Notes under the pieces: model-generated
Seen by the model: only the letters and a program-made list of their open reading frames with translations
What the model was told of the DNA's origin: nothing
Databases searched by the model: none
Program-made: the position numbers and the translations under genes
IMG/VR virus record: IMGVR_UViG_3300002143_000235
Coordinates: 1 to 64,000 of that record
DNA: 64,000 bases
Reading direction: 5' to 3' (one strand)
Part shown: positions 1,285-8,500 of the stretch, in pieces
Layout: each line of letters starts with the position of its first letter
Numbering within the stretch: the first letter of the stretch is position 1

Positions 1285-1683
1285 TTAAGAAAATTTAGAA
1301 GCTAACATATGAAAAAACAATGCTTTTTCTTGGATTGACATATTTGTTGATTTTTTTTCAGCAAGATCAAAAATATCAACAACTTGTTGTTTAACGTCTT
1401 CTTCAGAATCTTTAGCAATAATTGGTTTTGTTTTAATTTCAACTGACTCAACAACAGCTTCAATATTTTGAATATCATAAGGTAGTTGCATTTTTAATGA
1501 TCCGTGTTGTAAATATGATGATGAATCAATCATATTTTCAAGATCTGACATACAATTATCAACATGATAACCAGCATCACCTTCGCTTGAAGCTTCAACA
1601 GAACCTTCAACAACTACATTAACTGTAAATTTATACGTTCTTAGAGATTCATTCTCATTTACGTGATCTGTAAATTTTTTCAT
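1285..1683 (-). CDS. hypothetical protein with capsid-targeting-like N-terminus (MKKFTDHVNENES)
   Basis: 132 aa ORF; leader resembles T4 CTS ending in VNE. Confidence 0.6.
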   Translation of the reverse strand: MKKFTDHVNENESLRTYKFTVNVVVEGSVEASSEGDAGYHVDNCMSDLENMIDSSSYLQHGSLKMQLPYDIQNIEAVVESVEIKTKPIIAKDSEEDVKQQVVDIFDLAEKKSTNMSIQEKALFFHMLASKFS

Positions 1684-2402
1684 TATTTATCTTCTATCTT
1701 ATTTATTATTTCTTCTAGTACTGATGAAACTTCTGCAGTAAGTTCAATAAAATACTCGTCATTACCATCATTTTTATAGTACATCAATTGTTGAATTTCA
1801 AAATCGACACTACCATCATTTTCTGCAGGATTTTCATTTGTTTCTGGTGATGTTTCCCAAAAATTAGCATGATAATTTGATGTAACAACTAATGATACTT
1901 TTAAATCATCATTTATAAACGATGTCTCTTGTGTTGTTGTTTTATCATTTTCAAGATCTTTTACATATGGAATTTCATTTGCATATACATACCAACCGTC
2001 TCCAAATTCAACTACTTCAAATGTTCTATTAGGAACATTTGAATAGTTTGTTGTACGTTTTGTACGTGGCATTTTATACGCTTTAGCAACAACATTAACA
2101 AATGCTTCAATATCTTTTAAATGTTTAAGAGCTTCTAATTGTGCCTGAGTATTATCATCACTAAATTGCTCAAATGTTTTAATAACATATTCACGCTTTT
2201 CAGAAATAAACTTTGGGCTTGTTTTAATAGCTGTGATAATTTCACCCATGTTATCCTGTATAAATGTTGCAGATAATTCAGCAGGTGTATTTACAGGATC
2301 AACAAAATAGTTTTGTAAGATTTCAATTGCCTCTAGTTTATCAATATTCATTCCTGCCATGTAATCTACATAGAGTTGAATATCATTATATCTTCCGTCC
2401 AT
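1683..2402 (-). CDS. hypothetical protein
   Basis: 239 aa ORF, TAATG overlap with next gene, ATATATAA motif upstream (2424-2433). Confidence 0.7.
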   Translation of the reverse strand: MDGRYNDIQLYVDYMAGMNIDKLEAIEILQNYFVDPVNTPAELSATFIQDNMGEIITAIKTSPKFISEKREYVIKTFEQFSDDNTQAQLEALKHLKDIEAFVNVVAKAYKMPRTKRTTNYSNVPNRTFEVVEFGDGWYVYANEIPYVKDLENDKTTTQETSFINDDLKVSLVVTSNYHANFWETSPETNENPAENDGSVDFEIQQLMYYKNDGNDEYFIELTAEVSSVLEEIINKIEDK

Positions 2403-2446
2403 CTAAGGAATTATTTCATTTTTTTATATATATCAAACAGTTGAAA

Positions 2447-3334
2447 TCATATATCGAATTCACCAAAATCCATATCATCAGTATCTTGCTTGAAAGCCCC
2501 CGTTGTATAAGATATAATTTCTGTTTCCTGTATATTATTTGAAATAATAGAAAATTTAGTCCAACCTTTTGTTTTACCATATACTGGACTATTACCTGTA
2601 TTAATTCGTTTATCTAAGGTTGATAGTGAAATATTAAATTCAACACAAAATATTTTAAGATCTGATCCATTTACTTTATAAATAAATCCATTAGGAGCAA
2701 TAAATATATGATCAATAGATCTACTACTTTTTCTACCTTTATTAGCTATACTAATTTTATTACGCATTTCAGATGAAATTATAGCACCATAACGTGGATT
2801 ATTTTTTCCTTTAACTTTAGCTGAAATTTTTTCTTTACTGTTATTAGTGTGTTGATGTCCTTTAAAATAACCACCAACAGAAACTTGATGTGCTGTACGT
2901 AATTCTTTTTGAATTTTAGCTTGTTCAATACCATAAATTTCTTCGTAAGTTTTACCGCTATGATTAGGTGGACGATTATCTAAACAAAAATTACACAAAG
3001 GTCCACGTTTTACTGTTTCACCATCTATTGTACCAATTGCTTGAATACTTATAGTTTCATTGTTATATGCATCAGTTTCATTATTTGTAAAATAAATCTT
3101 TTCAATTATAGGTTCTAATCCTAATGATTGTATTTTTTCAAATTTATGTTTAAGAATTGAATTTAGTTTTTTGTTATTATTTTTAAAATTTTTAAAATGC
3201 TCTAAATAACGTTTATCTTTTCCTTTACCTAAATAAATAGGTTCAAATAAAAAACACAAATTTATGTTTTCATAAGTATATTTTCCAGGTTTTCTAGGAT
3301 CTAAATAAACATAATTATACCACATATCCATCAA
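2447..3334 (-). CDS. GIY-YIG homing endonuclease with NUMOD3-like repeats, fused in frame to an NrdB C-terminal tail
   Basis: YVYLDPRKPGKY..PIYLGKGKDKRYLEH GIY-YIG variant; HTNNSKEKISAKVKGKNNPRYG NUMOD3-like; ends QETEIISYTTGAFKQDTDDMDFGEFDI. Confidence 0.8.
   Translation of the reverse strand: MMDMWYNYVYLDPRKPGKYTYENINLCFLFEPIYLGKGKDKRYLEHFKNFKNNNKKLNSILKHKFEKIQSLGLEPIIEKIYFTNNETDAYNNETISIQAIGTIDGETVKRGPLCNFCLDNRPPNHSGKTYEEIYGIEQAKIQKELRTAHQVSVGGYFKGHQHTNNSKEKISAKVKGKNNPRYGAIISSEMRNKISIANKGRKSSRSIDHIFIAPNGFIYKVNGSDLKIFCVEFNISLSTLDKRINTGNSPVYGKTKGWTKFSIISNNIQETEIISYTTGAFKQDTDDMDFGEFDI
2471..2520 (-). repeat. direct repeat copy 1 of nrdB 3' end (49/50 identical to 3740-3789)
   Basis: catatcatcagtatcttgcttgaaagcccccgttgtataagatataattt; single mismatch at 2498 vs 3767. 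Confidence 0.97.
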
Positions 3335-3713
3335 TATAATTTATTTGTGTATTTTCAATTTTTATATATCGACCATCTGTATGAATTGATGCAAATTCCG
3401 GTAATTTATAACCATAAATAAATAATTTATTAACAAATACACATGGTGTAATATCAATTATTTTATCATTCTGTAATATTACAGAATGTTGGATAGCTAA
3501 TAATTCAGTATTTTCTTCATTTGTTAATAAATAGTATCCTAAAATTTTTTCACTATCGTGATTATCATAAATATATTTATTAACATTATTATGACAATCA
3601 TTCATTATGTAATTTGAAGTTAATGGTATATCTAAAATTAAACAATTTTCTGGTTTCATCTTTATAATAAAAGATGAAACCAAAGGAACAGATATTTCAG
3701 CTATTTTCCACAT
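3315..3713 (-). CDS. papain/transglutaminase-like protein with Cys40-His76-Asp87 triad, candidate protein glutamine deamidase
   Basis: DCHNNV..ILGYYLL..AIQHSVIL..KIIDITP; starts 2 nt after the nrdB stop. Confidence 0.55.
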   Translation of the reverse strand: MWKIAEISVPLVSSFIIKMKPENCLILDIPLTSNYIMNDCHNNVNKYIYDNHDSEKILGYYLLTNEENTELLAIQHSVILQNDKIIDITPCVFVNKLFIYGYKLPEFASIHTDGRYIKIENTQINYIDGYVV

Positions 3714-3715
3714 TT

Positions 3716-4789
3716 TTAAATATTAAAATCGTCAAAAATCATATCATCAGTATCTTGCTTGAAAGCGCCCGTTGTATAAGATATAATTTGAGTTTGTTGT
3801 GGCGCTTCTTGAACAGCATTTCCACCAATCCAGTTACCAATCCATCCAATAGGATTTGCTACTTTTTCAAAAATTGGTTCCATTTTGATAATCTTCATAC
3901 GCTGATTTGTTAAATACTTCATATACTGAATAAGAATTTCAGCATTTAGACCAATCATTGAACCATCTTTAAACAAATATCTTGCCCAATCCATTTCTTC
4001 TTGAGCAGCGTCGCGGTACATTTGTGCTGTAATATCTTTACATTCAGCAACAACCTCATGAAAACCTTCACTAGCATCTTCAGCCATGATTTTCAAAATA
4101 AGTGATGAAAATCCCATATGCAAGTTCTCGTCACGTGCAATAAGTGATATGATCTTTGCATTACCTTCCATCTTCTTATTCTGTGCAAAAGCAAATGAGC
4201 AAGCGAATGAAACGTAAAAACGAATACCTTCAAGAATGTTGATAGATACAAGTGTTAAATATAATTTCTTTTTTTGATTGTGAATTGTATCATCTGGAAT
4301 TGCATTAATCAATTCATCATAATATTTTGTTACCGACATTGCACGATCAAGTATACGTTGATCAGTAAGAACTGTATCAAGTACTTCAGAAGGATTTGTA
4401 TAAATCTGTTTGATGATGTAGGTATAAGAATACGAGTGAAGAGTTTCCATGAATTCCCATGCTTTAGCAAACGCTTCAACTTCTGGATTTGTACAGTTCT
4501 CAAGTAAATGCGAAATTCCACGTGATTGAATTGTATCAAGCAAAATCTGGTATTTAAGGTTGAGTGTGAATACAACTTGTTGAAATTCAGGAAGTGAATT
4601 AAAGTCCATCTTATCCTTACTCAAGTTAATTTCTTCTGGTCTCCACATGTAAGCAAGTTGTTGCTTGAACATGTTGAAGATCTTTTCATATTTTGGATGA
4701 TCGTATCGTTGAACTCCCAAACCATGTGGGCCAAAGAACATCGGCTGTGAACGTGTGTCCTCAGTGCTTGTATTTATTATCGATTTCAT
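3716..4789 (-). CDS. nrdB: class Ia ribonucleotide reductase beta subunit with atypical APQQTQIISY tail
   Basis: WRPEE (W48), YQILLD (D84), ETLHSYSY (E115/H118/Y122), ILEGIRFYVSFA (E204), RDENLH (D237/E238/H241); tail Tyr356 equivalent present. Confidence 0.96.
   Translation of the reverse strand: MKSIINTSTEDTRSQPMFFGPHGLGVQRYDHPKYEKIFNMFKQQLAYMWRPEEINLSKDKMDFNSLPEFQQVVFTLNLKYQILLDTIQSRGISHLLENCTNPEVEAFAKAWEFMETLHSYSYTYIIKQIYTNPSEVLDTVLTDQRILDRAMSVTKYYDELINAIPDDTIHNQKKKLYLTLVSINILEGIRFYVSFACSFAFAQNKKMEGNAKIISLIARDENLHMGFSSLILKIMAEDASEGFHEVVAECKDITAQMYRDAAQEEMDWARYLFKDGSMIGLNAEILIQYMKYLTNQRMKIIKMEPIFEKVANPIGWIGNWIGGNAVQEAPQQTQIISYTTGAFKQDTDDMIFDDFNI
3740..3789 (-). repeat. direct repeat copy 2 of nrdB 3' end (within nrdB)
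   Basis: catatcatcagtatcttgcttgaaagcgcccgttgtataagatataattt. Confidence 0.97.
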
Positions 4790-4818
4790 ATCTTATTTGT
4801 GTTTTGATTATAGACTAG

Positions 4819-4850
4819 AATGCACTGAAAGTCTGACCTTCCAGTGCATT
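4819..4850. terminator. stem-loop between nrdA and nrdB
   Basis: aatgcactg-aaagtctgaccttc-cagtgcatt inverted repeat. Confidence 0.55.
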
Positions 4851-4858
4851 TATTGGTA

Positions 4859-7141
4859 TTAGATAGAGCAAGCACCTCCTGCGCATGTTTCATCTGTACC
4901 CATATCATCAAGATCATCAGATTTTTTATCATCTGTGTTGGCATAGTAGATTGTCTTCAATCCCCATTTGTAGCTGTTGAAAATGTCAGTCATTACCGTC
5001 TTCAATGAGATTCCCTCAGCTGAGTACTCATAGTAGTGGTTTGCACTAATGGATTGATCAATCCATTTCTGAATGAAACCAACAATTTTTGTATAACCAT
5101 CATTAGATCCCATTTCAAATGCTTTTTGATATTTGTTCTTCAATCGAACAGACTCAGGAGCAACTTGTTTTACAACACCTGTCTTAGAACGCTTTGTAGT
5201 GATGAGTGATCTAATTGGTTCAATACCATTTGTAGCATTTTGAACTACTGCTGATGATTCTGCTGGCATAATAGCTGATAATACAGAATTGCGTAAACCT
5301 GCACCGTATTGTAATTCATATCTTAATGCTTCCCAATCACAAGAATATGGTCGTTTACATAATTCATCAAGATTTTTATTATATCGATCAATTGGTAAAA
5401 CACCTTGTGAATATGTTGTTTTATCATACCATTCACAAGCACCGAATTCTTTTGCTAATTTGTTTGATGCTACTAATAATGAATATTGAATTCGTTCAAA
5501 TAATTCATCAACTTTTTCGAGAGCCTCTGGATCAGTATATTTTAAATCTTGTTTAGCAAGCCAATATGCAAAATTAGTAACACCAACTCCTAAACTACGG
5601 CGTTTTAACATTTTTCTTGATGCATTAACTGGATAATCTTGGTGTTCAATTATAAAATCAAGTAATCGTACACAATATTCAGAACATTTATCTAGTTCTT
5701 CCATTGATTTTATATTTCCTAAATTAAGTGCTGCAAGTACACATAAAGCTATTTCACCTTCAGATAAATGTTCAGTTGATGGATCGTGGTCGATGTCATA
5801 AATTGATGTTAATTCTTTTGTTACTAAACATATTTCTACACATAGATTTGACATACGAACACGTTCAATGAATGGTGAATTAGAATTAACATTATCTATA
5901 TTCATGATATAGATTCTTCCAGTTCCAACACGCTCTTGGGCTATTAAATTCATTAATTCACGTGCCTTAATCGTCTTACGTTTTATTTTTTTATCATTTT
6001 CATATTTTACATACAATTCATCGAATTCAGCATTATCACCAAAAGCATCGTATAAACCTGGAACATCTGCTGGTGAAAATAAAGCAACATCTTCATTTTT
6101 TATAAAACGTTGAAAAATTAATTTTGATAATTGAATACCATAATCCATGTGTCGTACACGATTATCATCAGTTCCTTTGTTGTTCTTCAATATAACGACA
6201 TCTTCAATTTCTTGGTGCCACCAAGGAAAATAAATTGTTGCAGATCCTTTACGAATTCCACCTTGTGAACATGAATGTGTAGAGCTCTGAAATTGTTTAA
6301 AAAATGGAACAACTCCAGTATGTATAATTTCACCTCCACGAATCTCACTTCCAACACCACGAATTCTACCGCCATTAAGTCCAATACCAGCACGCTTAGA
6401 AACATATTTAGTAATTGCAGTATTTATGTGACAAATACTATCCAATGAATCACCAGTTTCTAATAATACACATGAACTATACTGTCTATTTGGTGTACGT
6501 ACACCAGCCATGATCGGTGTAGGTAATGATATTTTTTGCTGTGATATGAGATCATATAACTCTTTTACATGTTTTAATCTTACATCATGATCATAATTCA
6601 TAAATACTGTCATCGCTATAAGCATAAAAGCATATTGTGGCGTTTCGTAAATTGTTTTAGTTTTTCTGTGCTGAACCAAATACTTATCCATCAATTGCTG
6701 TAATCCAGCGTGTGTGAAATCATAATCACGTTTGTGTTTCAGATACAAATTCAATACAGAAACTTCTTCTGTTGTGTATTTCTCAAGAATGATTGGATCA
6801 TATACCTCACGTTTAATATTGTTAACAATCACATTCCATAAATGTGGCATATCTGTTTTTACCTCGAATACTTCTTTACGAAGAAGATAGTTTAAAAGAT
6901 TACCAGCCACATATTGATAATTCGGTGTACGCTCAGATATCATATCAACAGCAGATGTAATAAGTACATTGTGTATTTGACTTGTTTTAATTCCTGGAAA
7001 AAATTGAATTTCAGCATTCATAGCCACATCTGATGCTGAAACACCAGCAAGACCTTCTGTTGCCCATAAGAGCACCTTATTAATTTTTTCCGCATCTAAT
7101 GGTGTTTTTTCACCGTTTCGTTTAGTCACTTTTAACTCCAT
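4859..7141 (-). CDS. nrdA: class Ia ribonucleotide reductase alpha subunit with ATP cone
   Basis: VTKRNG ATP cone, PTPIMAGVRT..SSCVL, SNLCVEI, AIMPAESS, GLKTIYY, C-terminal CAGGACSI. Confidence 0.97.
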   Translation of the reverse strand: MELKVTKRNGEKTPLDAEKINKVLLWATEGLAGVSASDVAMNAEIQFFPGIKTSQIHNVLITSAVDMISERTPNYQYVAGNLLNYLLRKEVFEVKTDMPHLWNVIVNNIKREVYDPIILEKYTTEEVSVLNLYLKHKRDYDFTHAGLQQLMDKYLVQHRKTKTIYETPQYAFMLIAMTVFMNYDHDVRLKHVKELYDLISQQKISLPTPIMAGVRTPNRQYSSCVLLETGDSLDSICHINTAITKYVSKRAGIGLNGGRIRGVGSEIRGGEIIHTGVVPFFKQFQSSTHSCSQGGIRKGSATIYFPWWHQEIEDVVILKNNKGTDDNRVRHMDYGIQLSKLIFQRFIKNEDVALFSPADVPGLYDAFGDNAEFDELYVKYENDKKIKRKTIKARELMNLIAQERVGTGRIYIMNIDNVNSNSPFIERVRMSNLCVEICLVTKELTSIYDIDHDPSTEHLSEGEIALCVLAALNLGNIKSMEELDKCSEYCVRLLDFIIEHQDYPVNASRKMLKRRSLGVGVTNFAYWLAKQDLKYTDPEALEKVDELFERIQYSLLVASNKLAKEFGACEWYDKTTYSQGVLPIDRYNKNLDELCKRPYSCDWEALRYELQYGAGLRNSVLSAIMPAESSAVVQNATNGIEPIRSLITTKRSKTGVVKQVAPESVRLKNKYQKAFEMGSNDGYTKIVGFIQKWIDQSISANHYYEYSAEGISLKTVMTDIFNSYKWGLKTIYYANTDDKKSDDLDDMGTDETCAGGACSI

Positions 7142-7420
7142 AGTTGTTATTATGTTTTAATTATTGTAGTCTTATATATGTGTTGAATTCCTCAAAGTTT
7201 GAGTTCACACCTCTGCATTATGTGGTCAAAAAATATTATTAGTATATTTCAATATCGAAAATTAAAAAGTGTGCCACATATGTAATACATGCATACGTAT
7301 TAGACAAATGCTATGGATTTTGATATATAATAAAAACATTTTAAAAAAATATTTTTCAAAAGCATACCACGGATTAAATATTTTACCTATATTCGTATCG
7401 TTCAATTAATAATTAAGATT

Positions 7421-8500
7421 ATGTCTCAGAAATCACAAGCATTAAATTTTCTCGCTTTTCTTGAAAAAGGAGCACATACTAAAAAAGAAGCAATTCAATT
7501 GTTTGTTAATAGTAATCCTGAAGCAAATGTGAATAACTTCAAGTTCTATATAAACGCTGCAATCAAATCTGGTGAATGGACTCCAAAAGTAGAAGAGGTA
7601 ACTTCATCAATTCTTGGTCTTCCAGCGATTAAAGAATCAAATGTTGTTCCATTTAAAGTTACAACAGTAGATCCAACAATTCTTCGTGATGAAAATTTTA
7701 AAGCATTCAAAACGGGAACAGCAGTCGATCGCATTGCTTCTAAACGTGATGGTGTCATGCCTGGTTGTGTATATGTAGTTCCTGGTGAATCAGGTGCAGG
7801 AAAAACAACAGTTTGTGTAAATATTGCTACTTATCTTAAAAGAAACAATCCTGGATTTACGGCTGGTTTTATTTCAGCTGAAATGGTTCTTGAAGATTGG
7901 ACTGATGAAGTATATGACAATAAGGATCTTGCAGATCTTGAAACAATTTTCATGCTCGATTACCTTGATGCTGATAACTACCTTGATGTACTTGTTCAAG
8001 CATTGAGTACATGGAATTTTATTGTTCTTGATTCGTTTGAAGTTATTCTTGATCAAATTAAAGAGATTAAAGGATGGACAGGAAAAAAAGCTGAAGCATA
8101 TCTCATCAATATTTTACGTCAAGCAGCTGATGAAAGTCGTTGTACAATTTTCGCGATTCAACATTTCACTAAAGGTGGTACTTATGCAGGATCAAGCAAA
8201 TTAAAACATATGCTTACAGGAATGTTGTATGTTCGTTTTGATGAAGGCGGTGAACGTTACATCGAGTTTGCTAAAAATCGCCGCGCTGGACATATGGTTA
8301 ACAAACGTCTATACTTTACAAAATGTAAAGAAACTGGTAAATTATTGTTTGACGGTAACAAATTTGAAATGCATGAAGCACAACGAGAATTTTCTGTGTC
8401 TGAGGTTAGTAAAATCAAAGAAGAAGAAAATGAATTTGATGCATTATTAGAGCAAGTAAAACTTCGCGAAACTGAAACTTCTGTATTAGTTGAAGCATAA
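7421..8500 (+). CDS. RadA/Sms-like RecA-family ATPase (no Zn finger or Lon domain)
   Basis: GESGAGKTT Walker A, IVLDSF Walker B, KGGTYAGSSKLKHML and KNRRAG RadA-like motifs. Confidence 0.75.
   Translation: MSQKSQALNFLAFLEKGAHTKKEAIQLFVNSNPEANVNNFKFYINAAIKSGEWTPKVEEVTSSILGLPAIKESNVVPFKVTTVDPTILRDENFKAFKTGTAVDRIASKRDGVMPGCVYVVPGESGAGKTTVCVNIATYLKRNNPGFTAGFISAEMVLEDWTDEVYDNKDLADLETIFMLDYLDADNYLDVLVQALSTWNFIVLDSFEVILDQIKEIKGWTGKKAEAYLINILRQAADESRCTIFAIQHFTKGGTYAGSSKLKHMLTGMLYVRFDEGGERYIEFAKNRRAGHMVNKRLYFTKCKETGKLLFDGNKFEMHEAQREFSVSEVSKIKEEENEFDALLEQVKLRETETSVLVEA

Follow-up and report, generated by a model that had tools for sequence, protein, structure and literature searches.

A homing-endonuclease cassette in a phage nrdB gene carries a Glu-to-Gln recoded tail and a small Cys/His/Asp protein inferred to restore glutamate

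Overview of the insertion

A mobile homing-endonuclease cassette has replaced the end of a phage ribonucleotide reductase (RNR) small subunit gene, nrdB, with a copy in which conserved glutamates are written as glutamines, and in our survey such glutamine tails occurred only where a gene for a small Cys/His/Asp protein lies next to nrdB. We infer that this protein most likely converts the glutamines back to glutamate on the finished NrdB, a kind of repair that has not been described before, although the chemistry rests on context rather than on any match to a known enzyme. The locus lies in a 64,000-nucleotide stretch of DNA from an IMG/VR virus record (hereafter, the window). An earlier note, made from the sequence alone, had pointed out that nrdB ends in a tail recoded at the positions of E. 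coli NrdB E350 and E352, that an unrecoded copy of the tail lies 1.27 kb downstream, and that a Cys-His-Asp ORF and a GIY-YIG gene lie between the two. We found this observation to be correct in every detail.

Anatomy of the nrdB insertion

The nrdB gene (3716-4789, minus strand, 357 aa) encodes a class Ia small subunit, matches Ribonuc_red_sm (PF00268, E 4.6e-51, covering residues 32-313) and ends in ...EAPQ-Q-T-Q-IISYTTGAFKQDTDDMIFDDFNI, with CAA codons at 3796-3794 and 3790-3788. The second copy of the tail reads CAG GAA ACA GAA, with GAA at 2527-2525 and 2521-2519, followed by IISYTTGAFKQDTDDMDFGEFDI and a stop codon, and it lies in frame at the end of the GIY-YIG ORF. A repeat search reported the two copies as an 81-nt direct repeat (3720-3800 versus 2451-2531) with 85% identity and a spacing of 1269 nt. 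The central ~57 nt differ at only one base, while the differences cluster at the four Q/E-T-Q/E codons and in the last 8 codons. The repeat is not a chance resemblance, as the second copy is base-for-base the tail of an uninterrupted nrdB in a near-identical relative (98% identity), which we designate L002.

Comparison with L002 defines the insertion as an AT-rich cassette of 1269 bp (2532-3800), placed in frame at codon 331 of nrdB. L002 lacks the cassette but is otherwise collinear, with the right junction lying exactly before CAG GAA (window position 2530) and only 5 mismatches in the remaining ~3.7 kb compared downstream. The composition of the insert is foreign, with 22-25% GC (22-28% as given for the cassette 2532-3800) against 35% for nrdB. 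The nrdB body (codons 1-330; 3801-4789, minus strand) is identical in amino-acid sequence to that of L002, and NrdA (760 aa) likewise shows no amino-acid difference between the filled and the empty phage, so nothing else compensates for the E350Q and E352Q changes. The downstream flanking gene (1683-2402, minus strand, 239 aa) is the same neighbour as in the empty-site relative.

The cassette begins with its own nrdB tail (3716-3800, minus strand), encoding Q331-I357 plus the stop codon and ending in ...MIFDDFNI, with Gln332 and Gln334 at the positions of E. coli E350 and E352. The recoded codons (3788-3796, minus strand) read CAA ACT CAA where the native sequence is GAA ACA GAA, and the replacement tail differs from the native one by these two E-to-Q changes and by 4 residues in the last 8. 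The tyrosine of the radical-transfer pathway (E. coli Y356) is present, but the conserved Glu-x-Glu that precedes it in class Ia NrdB proteins is absent from the expressed tail. Next comes ORF132 (3315-3713, minus strand, 132 aa), whose ATG lies 2 nt after the nrdB stop codon and which contains Cys40, His76 and Asp87. A 15-bp hairpin inside the 5' part of ORF132 (3649-3684, minus strand) is terminator-like and could attenuate expression of the cassette; its folding gave a z score of -4.5, with 0 of 200 shuffled sequences folding as well. The homing endonuclease proper (2532-3334, minus strand) overlaps the end of ORF132 with its start and matches GIY-YIG (PF22945, E 6.7e-9), NUMOD3 (E 1.3e-7) and the homing endonuclease family PHROG 655, thus combining a GIY-YIG catalytic domain with a DNA-binding module. 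Homologues sit in the same position in two other loci, L033 and L039. The displaced native tail (2447-2531, minus strand; QETEIISY...MDFGEFDI plus stop) is now read in frame as the C-terminus of the endonuclease.

As an in-frame native tail is preserved downstream in the window, L033 and L039, we considered whether the cassette might be removed by a group I intron, an intein or translational bypass, such that mature NrdB would carry the QETE tail. An Rfam scan of positions 2000-5000 at E<=10 returned only chance miRNA/snoRNA hits and no group I or group II intron. The nrdB ORF ends in a stop codon, ORF132 is a separate frame, and no Hint or Intein_splicing domain was found in the window ORFs. 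In addition, most Gln-tailed loci (the L112 and L013 types described below, L035, L037, L117 and L203-L208) have no intact second tail copy to splice to. Removal at the RNA or protein level is therefore very unlikely. A sortase-like model, in which the old tail would be transferred from the endonuclease onto NrdB, was rejected because most loci have no second tail.

Glutamine tails and the ORF132 family

The earlier note had proposed that its reading would fail if Gln tails proved common in nrdB genes lacking the adjacent ORF, and we examined this by surveying nrdB tails. A search with the NrdB tail in a set of 5.8 billion proteins returned only 9 proteins, and as such the survey relied on IMG/VR loci (given L numbers; proteins and their contexts found by other routes have P numbers). 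Among 125 distinct nrdB tail alleles, Gln at position 350, 352 or 354 (E. coli numbering) occurs with an ORF132-family gene next to nrdB in 41 and without it in 0, whereas all-Glu tails occur without the gene in 82 and with it in 2 (Fisher 5e-31). On a tree of the nrdB body, which contains at least 23 state changes, 16 independent supported contrasts all go in the same direction (sign test 3e-5). Sets sampled through NrdB likewise contain no Gln tail without the domain. Seven further contexts fit, one reached through the NrdB tail (P0162) and six through distant family members, each having nrdB directly upstream with at least one Gln. No decayed remnants of the domain were found in Glu-tailed loci. 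The recoded set is wider than the earlier note had seen, covering positions 350, 352 and 354 in variable combinations, including tails in which 350 stays Glu.

The partner of the Gln tail is the domain and not a particular endonuclease. A GIY-YIG gene follows the domain in the window, L033 and L039, and precedes it in loci of the L112 type. The domain is fused to the N-terminus of a GIY-YIG protein in P0052, P0057, P0060 and P0064, and to the C-terminus of a DUF723 plus Vsr-like nuclease in loci of the L013 type. In L035/36, L037, L117 and L208, no endonuclease lies beside the domain, yet both the domain and the Gln tail are retained. The coupling of the domain gene to nrdB, seen in the window as a 2-nt spacing, also occurs in L035, where the start codon of the domain gene and the nrdB stop codon overlap.

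Positions 350 and 352 are only ever Glu or Gln, and in 82 of 82 distinct domain-free alleles both are Glu. Gln is the one residue that hydrolysis turns into Glu. The tail remains under constraint, with 315 codons showing synonymous changes against 94 showing other non-synonymous changes over 800 tail codons in 20 pairs. In the E. coli enzyme, substitution of E350 disrupts radical transfer, and cryo-EM shows that this residue positions the beta tail (PMC11482829), although the effect of E350Q is known for E. coli and not for these phage enzymes.

The endonuclease probably acts at the region of the Glu codons, with cleavage itself being inferred. In 7 of 7 closest filled/empty pairs, the left edge of diverged donor-type DNA falls within about 30 nt of the E350 codon. 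This sharp rise in divergence, together with the presence/absence polymorphism between the window and L002, is as expected for a free-standing homing endonuclease with a co-converted flank.

The same observations raise the possibility that linkage alone explains the association. In that reading, the Gln codons are cleavage-immunity mutations that hitch-hike with the cassette by co-conversion, phage NrdB tolerates Gln at these positions (or the phage relies on host RNR), and ORF132 is an endonuclease accessory, such as a target-recognition, regulatory or immunity module, that never touches NrdB protein. The Gln codons lie within 0.1-0.7 kb of the cassette, so co-conversion plus endonuclease immunity could produce much of the association. 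The frequent fusion of the domain to GIY-YIG or DUF723/Vsr-like nucleases also fits an accessory module, as does the absence of any fold or profile link to an amidohydrolase. Two loci (L062 and L094) carry an intact domain and endonuclease with an all-Glu tail, and distant family members occur away from nrdB (P0059). However, only Glu-to-Gln changes are seen at the two positions that are otherwise invariant, endonuclease-free loci keep both the domain and the Gln tail, and no Gln tail survives without the domain although endonucleases are repeatedly lost. The endonucleases already carry DNA-binding modules of their own (NUMOD3 or DUF723 repeats), the invariant residues of the family are Cys, His and Asp rather than basic ones, and E350 substitution disrupts radical transfer in E. 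coli. Isoelectric points, compared as a means of telling an enzyme from a DNA binder, are unremarkable for the family (median 6.7), which is compatible with the linkage reading, while ORF132 itself is acidic (5.2), which counts against it. We regard linkage alone as possible but unlikely.

Sequence and predicted structure of ORF132

A search for relatives of ORF132 yielded 207 representatives at E<=1e-3. In 49 diverse members, C40 and H76 are invariant, and H41, N43, G59, S77, D87, I88, T89 and P90 are conserved at 90% or more. In the AlphaFold2 model of ORF132 (pLDDT 89.3), C40 begins a helix (40-50), H76 lies in a strand (71-81), and D87 follows a strand (84-86). A second confident model of the family (pLDDT 92) shows a similar order of elements, and judged from the order of secondary structure elements alone, the predicted arrangement is papain-style, with Cys at a helix N-terminus and His and Asp on neighbouring strands.

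Nevertheless, we were unable to assign ORF132 to any known family. Pfam gave only a sub-threshold Fin hit and PHROGs nothing usable. Scanning the 49 members against Pfam gave no shared family for the domain, with one member having an isolated Peptidase_C47 hit at E 0.016, which is not significant after multiple testing. A profile search against PDB sequences gave nothing significant; one weak hit, possibly to an intein-like stretch, at E 0.28 was treated as chance. Foldseek searches of both models against the PDB gave best E-values of 0.26 and 0.49 with TM about 0.2, and thus recovered no known papain-like, transglutaminase-like or other deamidase. A search of BFVD returned only other uncharacterised phage proteins, including a GIY-YIG fusion. 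The assignment as a candidate NrdB-tail glutamine amidohydrolase is therefore an inference from context.

The pairing of this family with a recoded tail is common in uncultured phages, with about 100 loci found here, but is absent from 50,697 isolate phage genomes at the tblastn thresholds used, apart from one weak partial hit. ORF132 and the L112-type domain found nothing in these searches, the family member P0063 gave the weak partial hit (E 2e-3) in an unannotated faecal "Bacteriophage sp." contig from an uncultured phage, and P0064 matched only through its GIY-YIG part. A blastn search for close relatives of the locus among isolate phages found only distant nrdB matches, and a search of cellular genomes found one short MAG contig only.

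Interpretation

The analysis establishes that a homing-endonuclease cassette is inserted in frame at the Q349/E350 codons (E. coli numbering) of a jumbo phage's class Ia nrdB, that it supplies its own copy of the last 27 codons such that NrdB stays full length, that the native tail has been pushed 1.27 kb downstream onto the end of the endonuclease ORF, and that the new tail writes the conserved glutamates before the radical-transfer tyrosine as glutamines. Comparison across many phages also establishes that such tails, among those sampled, exist only where an ORF132-family gene lies next to nrdB, whatever endonuclease accompanies it. The remainder is inferred, namely that the endonuclease cuts naive nrdB at or next to these Glu codons, that the CAA/CAG alleles are immune, and that ORF132, translated together with NrdB, uses its conserved Cys/His/Asp to hydrolyse the side-chain amides of Gln350, 352 and 354 back to Glu, restoring an active tail. 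In this view, a by-product would be addiction, as a phage with a recoded tail could not lose ORF132 even after the endonuclease decays. We consider this explanation somewhat more likely than not. The earlier note had inferred a cleavage-immune GAA-to-CAA allele supplied together with a glutamine deamidase; everything in this interpretation that could be examined computationally came out in its favour, but with the enzymatic activity only inferred, it is partly supported.

Two other roles for ORF132 share the association and the conserved Cys/His/Asp. In the first, ORF132 would act on the tail glutamines through the same thioester chemistry but resolved by an amine (transglutaminase-type), for instance cross-linking Gln350 to the alpha-subunit lysine that E350 contacts, or would make another Gln modification; in the E. 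coli complex, E350 hydrogen-bonds K154 of alpha (PMC11482829). The recoding of up to three alternate positions in variable combinations better fits a situation in which any of them may be Gln because all end up as Glu than it fits one specific cross-link, and NrdA is unchanged between the filled and empty phage. We consider this reading doubtful. In the second, ORF132 would be a protease or modifier that attacks Glu-type NrdB tails of the host or of rival phages, with the Gln tail as the element's resistant allele. The cysteine peptidase-like residues and the strict pairing with a changed tail are compatible with such a system, but it would require Gln-tailed NrdB to be active on its own, against the invariance of Glu in all cassette-free alleles and the E. 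coli data. Additionally, RNR made in a co-infected cell is a shared good, and the element would gain little. This reading appears quite unlikely.

Homing endonucleases aim at codons that cannot change because the protein needs them. If our explanation holds, the cassette has found a way round that rule by changing the codon and repairing the protein. In its fullest form, which we judge about as likely as not, a selfish cassette would rewrite essential Glu codons of its host's RNR as Gln, making the site uncuttable, and would carry a dedicated, previously unknown protein-glutamine amidohydrolase that restores Glu after translation, locking the host into keeping the element's enzyme. Enzymatic side-chain editing would then join RNA splicing, protein splicing and subunit reassembly among the ways by which mobile elements neutralise their own damage, being a third way, besides intron and intein splicing, of keeping the host gene working. 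It would also define a new enzyme family with a fold not seen in the PDB, show an addiction mechanism that explains why the gene outlives its endonuclease, and give RNR enzymologists a natural switch at E350, E352 and E354 of the beta tail, a region whose role in radical transfer is still being worked out. Should linkage alone prove to be the answer, the finding would reduce to a further form of an already described type of mobile element. Even if the chemistry proves different, the strict pairing of a new Cys/His/Asp family with Glu-to-Gln recoding of an essential enzyme is unexplained by anything known, and we found no publication describing it.

Comparison with known systems

The proposed chemistry, Gln to Glu, is that of Cys-His-Asp protein glutamine amidohydrolases such as the N-terminal Gln amidase Ntaq1 and bacterial protein-glutaminase. 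In the models of ORF132, a conserved Cys at a predicted helix start is followed by His and Asp on later strands, an order of elements that would fit such enzymes, and the protein may bear a motif resemblance to Ntaq1 (C-x-x-N-[IV] ... H-[VS]-V ... D-[LI]-[DT]), but with no profile or fold match to any solved structure, its membership of this group is only putative.

Free-standing GIY-YIG and HNH homing endonucleases of T4-like phages, including the Seg proteins and MobE at nrdA/nrdB, are examples of intronless homing. As in those systems, a GIY-YIG plus NUMOD3 enzyme here sits next to an RNR gene, close relatives differ in its presence, and flanking markers are co-converted. Known cases obtain immunity from silent or tolerated differences or from disruption of the site, and none is reported to recode essential residues or to carry a protein-modifying partner. 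Our literature search found no paper combining homing endonuclease, RNR and deamidase.

Inteins and group I introns in RNR genes, as well as the mobE-split nrdA of Aeromonas phage Aeh1, are selfish elements that keep the host gene functional by a repair step at the RNA or protein level (e.g., PMC3045599). In the present case, there was no sign of splicing, and the proposed repair is a side-chain amide hydrolysis by a separate enzyme rather than excision or subunit reassembly.

The closest anatomical parallel is found in mobile endonuclease ORFs that insert with a foreign gene C-terminus, as in Allomyces macrogynus atp6 and Glomus atp6, atp9, cox2 and nad3 (PMC3630166). There too, an inserted C-terminal coding piece in phase with the host gene is followed by an endonuclease ORF and then by the displaced native C-terminus, which is identical to that of close relatives. 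Those insertions are in fungal mitochondria, and their inserted C-terminus encodes an equivalent protein sequence, whereas here the host is a phage gene, the inserted tail changes functionally critical Glu to Gln, and an extra conserved Cys/His/Asp gene always comes with it.

Organization of the nrdB locus and the empty site

The window is one end of a 313.7-kb uncultured jumbo-phage contig, IMGVR_UViG_3300002143_000235, and all of the window features discussed here lie on the minus strand. The nrdB gene occupies positions 3716-4789 and encodes a 357 aa product that matches Pfam Ribonuc_red_sm (E 4.6e-51) and ends ...EAPQ-Q-T-Q-IISYTTGAFKQDTDDMIFDDFNI, with CAA codons at 3796-3794 and 3790-3788. 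ORF132 (3315-3713) starts two bases after the nrdB stop, and its end overlaps the start of a GIY-YIG/NUMOD3 ORF (2447-3334; PF22945, E 6.7e-9; NUMOD3, E 1.3e-7). The last 28 codons of that ORF are a second nrdB tail, Q-E-T-E-IISYTTGAFKQDTDDMDFGEFDI, with GAA codons at 2527-2525 and 2521-2519, and a repeat search found an 81-nt direct repeat at 85% identity and 1269-nt spacing. As such, every part of the observation made in an earlier note, that nrdB ends in a Gln-recoded tail with a Glu-type copy downstream and a Cys-His-Asp ORF and a GIY-YIG gene between them, was found to be correct. A perfect 13-bp stem (15 bp with extension) with a 6-nt loop was also found about 30 nt into ORF132 (3649-3684, minus strand); its MFE z-score is -4.5 and it was flagged by a terminator scan, and it may throttle expression of the cassette genes relative to nrdB.

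A relative, L002 (IMGVR_UViG_3300002138_000145), is collinear with the window and provides the empty site. Its nrdB is uninterrupted, its tail is base-for-base the downstream copy of the window, and it is followed by the same 239-aa gene. The insert is 1269 bp (window 2532-3800), with its right edge lying exactly before CAG GAA, while to the left the two phages are identical from the 5' part of nrdB up to the Ala codon three codons before the first recoded Glu. The few differences between the window and L002 outside the cassette are clustered in two short patches, 9 silent changes at the 5' end of nrdB (4685-4754) and 10 changes (7492-7603) within the 359-aa ORF at 7421-8500, which suggests small recombination patches in otherwise identical genomes. 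The insert has 22-25% GC in ORF132 and the endonuclease, against 35% in nrdB. NrdA (760 aa) and NrdB residues 1-330 show no amino-acid difference between the two phages, and therefore at the protein level the whole difference in the reductase is E350Q, E352Q (E. coli numbering) and four residues in the last eight.

Among those further differences, the new tails of the window and of the related locus L033 both carry Asn where the old tails have Asp, three residues from the C-terminus (window 3722-3724 versus 2453-2455; FNI versus FDI, and FNF versus FDF). However, locus L039 has Asn in both copies, so this may be ordinary variation. In these three diverged cassettes (window 2447-2531, L033 6235-6315 and L039 about 5085-5171), the GIY-YIG ORF has no stop of its own and reads in frame into the displaced native NrdB tail. 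The endonuclease would therefore carry the NrdA-binding peptide and the pathway Tyr at its C-terminus, which may matter, perhaps through binding to NrdA, or may only be a consequence of in-frame insertion.

Absence of support for splicing

A search of positions 2000-5000 against Rfam found no intron or other RNA family, no intein domain was found, and most of the related loci described below have no intact second tail to splice to. We therefore consider removal of the cassette by splicing or bypass a remote possibility. In two relatives that carry the cassette, L033 (362-3883) and L035 (5523-9079), nrdA is broken into two ORFs that each bear half of an intein splicing domain, with a 249-250-aa ORF between them (a weak GIY-YIG hit in L035). 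This is the "fractured gene" arrangement; the window's own nrdA (4859-7141) is intact.

Association of Gln tails with the ORF132 domain

To assess whether Gln tails are common without a relative of ORF132, which the earlier note had set as a refuting condition, we sampled loci from IMG/VR in several ways. When loci of the window clade were sampled by NrdB, five of the 29 with a visible tail had Gln at 350 and/or 352 (the window and loci L009, L013, L017 and L025), and all five, and none of the other 24, had a gene immediately downstream encoding a relative of ORF132. Sampling by the ORF132 domain instead gave 80 of the 103 loci found, and every locus with enough upstream DNA has nrdB directly upstream. 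The tails of these loci read QQTQVQSY, QETQVQSY, QQTQISSY, QQSQITSY and so on, while cassette-free relatives read QETEVESY, QESEITSY and the like, and thus a third position, 354, is recoded as well. In the converse sample, of 80 loci taken by the NrdB of that second clade, 77 had all-Glu tails with no domain and three had Gln tails, all with the domain.

Pooling these samples and counting distinct tail alleles, Gln at any of positions 350, 352 or 354 was found in 41 alleles with the domain and in 0 without it, while tails with no Gln were found in 2 alleles with the domain and in 82 without it (Fisher 5e-31, not corrected for phylogeny). On a tree of the nrdB body built without the tail, domain presence changes at least 23 times, and in 16 independent supported contrasts the Gln tail follows it every time, or in 15 with one tie (sign test 3e-5). 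Additionally, a QQTQ NrdB found through a tail-directed protein search has a family member as its next gene, and six distant family members looked up blind, including domain-GIY-YIG fusions, all lie just after an nrdB with at least one Gln (QQTQISSY, QQTEKEAY, QQTEVESY, METEKQSY, QEVQLSSY and QQSEIQSY).

The constant partner of the Gln tail is the domain and not the endonuclease. In the window, L033/34 and L039, the order is nrdB, domain, and GIY-YIG plus old tail, while in the type represented by locus L112 the order is nrdB, GIY-YIG and domain, with two different GIY-YIG lineages. In family members P0052, P0057, P0060 and P0064, the domain is fused to the N-terminus of a GIY-YIG, and in the L013 type it is fused to the C-terminus of a DUF723-repeat, Vsr/DUF559-like nuclease. 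Loci L035/36, L037, L117 and L208 have the domain with no endonuclease beside it and a tail that is still Gln. In L035/36 a 31-aa remnant of endonuclease plus old tail survives; in L035 this 31-aa ORF (5401-5496; MDIFYNYIKNYEEEGAIKQDVYDQDFSDFDI) is what remains of the endonuclease start joined to the end of the old tail, a deletion scar left while ORF132 and the QQEQ tail are intact. Near the nrdB-domain pair of L208, on a 148-kb phage contig, lie (at 5262-8396) an IS605 OrfB/TnpB (Cas12f-like) gene, a glutaredoxin, and Acb1 and Acb2/Tad1-like anti-defence genes. Some stand-alone family members (P0024, P0028 and P0040) themselves end in an NrdB-like tail (for example ...QETEKESYVIGSFDNDMDDTNFEEDFDF), and in some lineages the domain ORF, rather than the endonuclease, abuts the displaced native tail. 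Two loci, L062 and L094, have an intact endonuclease and domain but an all-Glu tail, and look like arrivals without co-conversion or revertants. No Glu-tailed locus was found to hold a decayed domain.

Sequence features of the recoded tail

At positions 350 and 352 the only residues seen are Glu and Gln, with Glu in 82 of 82 alleles without the domain and Gln in 30 of 43 and 40 of 43, respectively, with it. No Asp, Lys, Ala or Gly appears, although each is also one base from GAA, and Gln is the only residue that a single hydrolysis converts to Glu. The combinations vary (QxQxQ, ExQxQ, QxE, ExQ and 354 alone), which is what relaxed Glu/Gln choice or partial co-conversion would give. In domain-bearing alleles the tail carries about twice the synonymous divergence of the body, yet the changes remain mostly synonymous apart from Glu-to-Gln, with 315 synonymous, 52 Glu-to-Gln and 94 other changes over 800 codons in 20 pairs. 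The tail is therefore donor-derived DNA under continued protein-level constraint and not a decaying gene.

In the seven closest filled/empty pairs, the mismatch density jumps within the 30-nt bin that holds the E350 codon, which places the recombination or cleavage zone at the Glu codons, as the earlier note had inferred. In E. coli, substitution of E350 disrupts radical transfer between subunits, and cryo-EM shows that the residue positions the beta tail through K154, S647 and bridging waters (PMC11482829). The recoded positions are Tyr minus 6, minus 4 and minus 2, which is one face of an extended strand, while the invariant Gln349 lies on the other face; we infer that this would explain why Gln349 is left alone.

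Sequence and predicted structure of ORF132

ORF132 belongs to an unnamed family with 207 representatives at E<=1e-3 among 1.84 billion proteins, and searches against Pfam and PHROG assigned it to no family. It is essentially confined to uncultured phages, as tblastn against 50,697 isolate genomes found nothing for the domain except one weak partial hit (E 2e-3) in an uncultured faecal phage contig, and a search of GTDB genomes found only one MAG scrap. Distant members of the superfamily also occur away from nrdB. One is a GC-rich protein with two tandem copies of the domain (P0089, L199 337-1320), and another is a 140-aa protein among bacterial-looking genes such as EamA and DUF6641 (P0059, L200 4925-5347). 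The family may have other substrates.

Across 49 diverse members, C40 and H76 are invariant and H41, N43, G59, S77, D87, I88, T89 and P90 are conserved at 90% or more, giving the motifs C-H-x-N, G-Y-Y, H-S and D-I-T-P. Two AlphaFold models are confident (pLDDT 89.3 and 92.2, pTM 0.83), and both place the Cys at the first turn of a helix, the His in the middle of the second following strand, and the Asp just after the next short strand, which is the order found in papain-like Cys-His-Asp hydrolases. However, Foldseek found no PDB relative for either model, with best E-values of 0.26 and 0.49 and TM about 0.2, and a BFVD search returned only uncharacterised phage proteins. The motifs may resemble those of the N-terminal glutamine amidase Ntaq1, but membership of any known deamidase family is not shown. 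ORF132 itself is acidic (pI 5.2), against 9.6 for the endonuclease part, although the family as a whole is not consistently so.

Proposed mechanism

Our analysis establishes the insertion and its replacement tail, the strict and repeated pairing of Gln tails with the domain, the interchangeability and loss of the endonuclease, and the absence of compensating change elsewhere in the reductase. What we infer from these is that the endonuclease cuts at the Glu-codon region, that the CAA/CAG alleles are immune, that ORF132 hydrolyses Gln350, 352 and 354 to Glu on NrdB, and that recoding makes ORF132 indispensable, which would explain its survival after endonuclease loss. The interpretation offered in the earlier note, of a cleavage-immune allele supplied together with an enzyme that deamidates Gln back to Glu on the protein, is thus supported in part, with the chemistry remaining an inference.

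The main caveat is that the Gln codons lie within a few hundred bases of the cassette, and therefore co-conversion plus self-immunity could generate much of the association by linkage, with ORF132 being an accessory module. The arguments that go beyond linkage are the Glu-to-Gln exclusivity, the invariance of Glu elsewhere, the endonuclease-free loci that keep both the domain and the Gln tail, the absence of Gln tails without the domain, and the enzyme-like invariant residues. On balance, we consider the full explanation slightly more likely than not and linkage alone possible but doubtful, while some other Gln-directed chemistry is unlikely and a poison-and-resistance scheme is more unlikely still.

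Comparison with known systems

Full-text literature searches found no paper linking homing endonucleases, ribonucleotide reductase and deamidation. For the recoding of essential residues together with a dedicated partner protein, we could find no precedent. In contrast, the cassette architecture does have a precedent in fungal mitochondria, where an inserted C-terminus in phase with the host gene is followed by an endonuclease ORF and then by the displaced native C-terminus, as in Allomyces atp6 and in Glomus atp6, atp9, cox2 and nad3 (PMC3630166).
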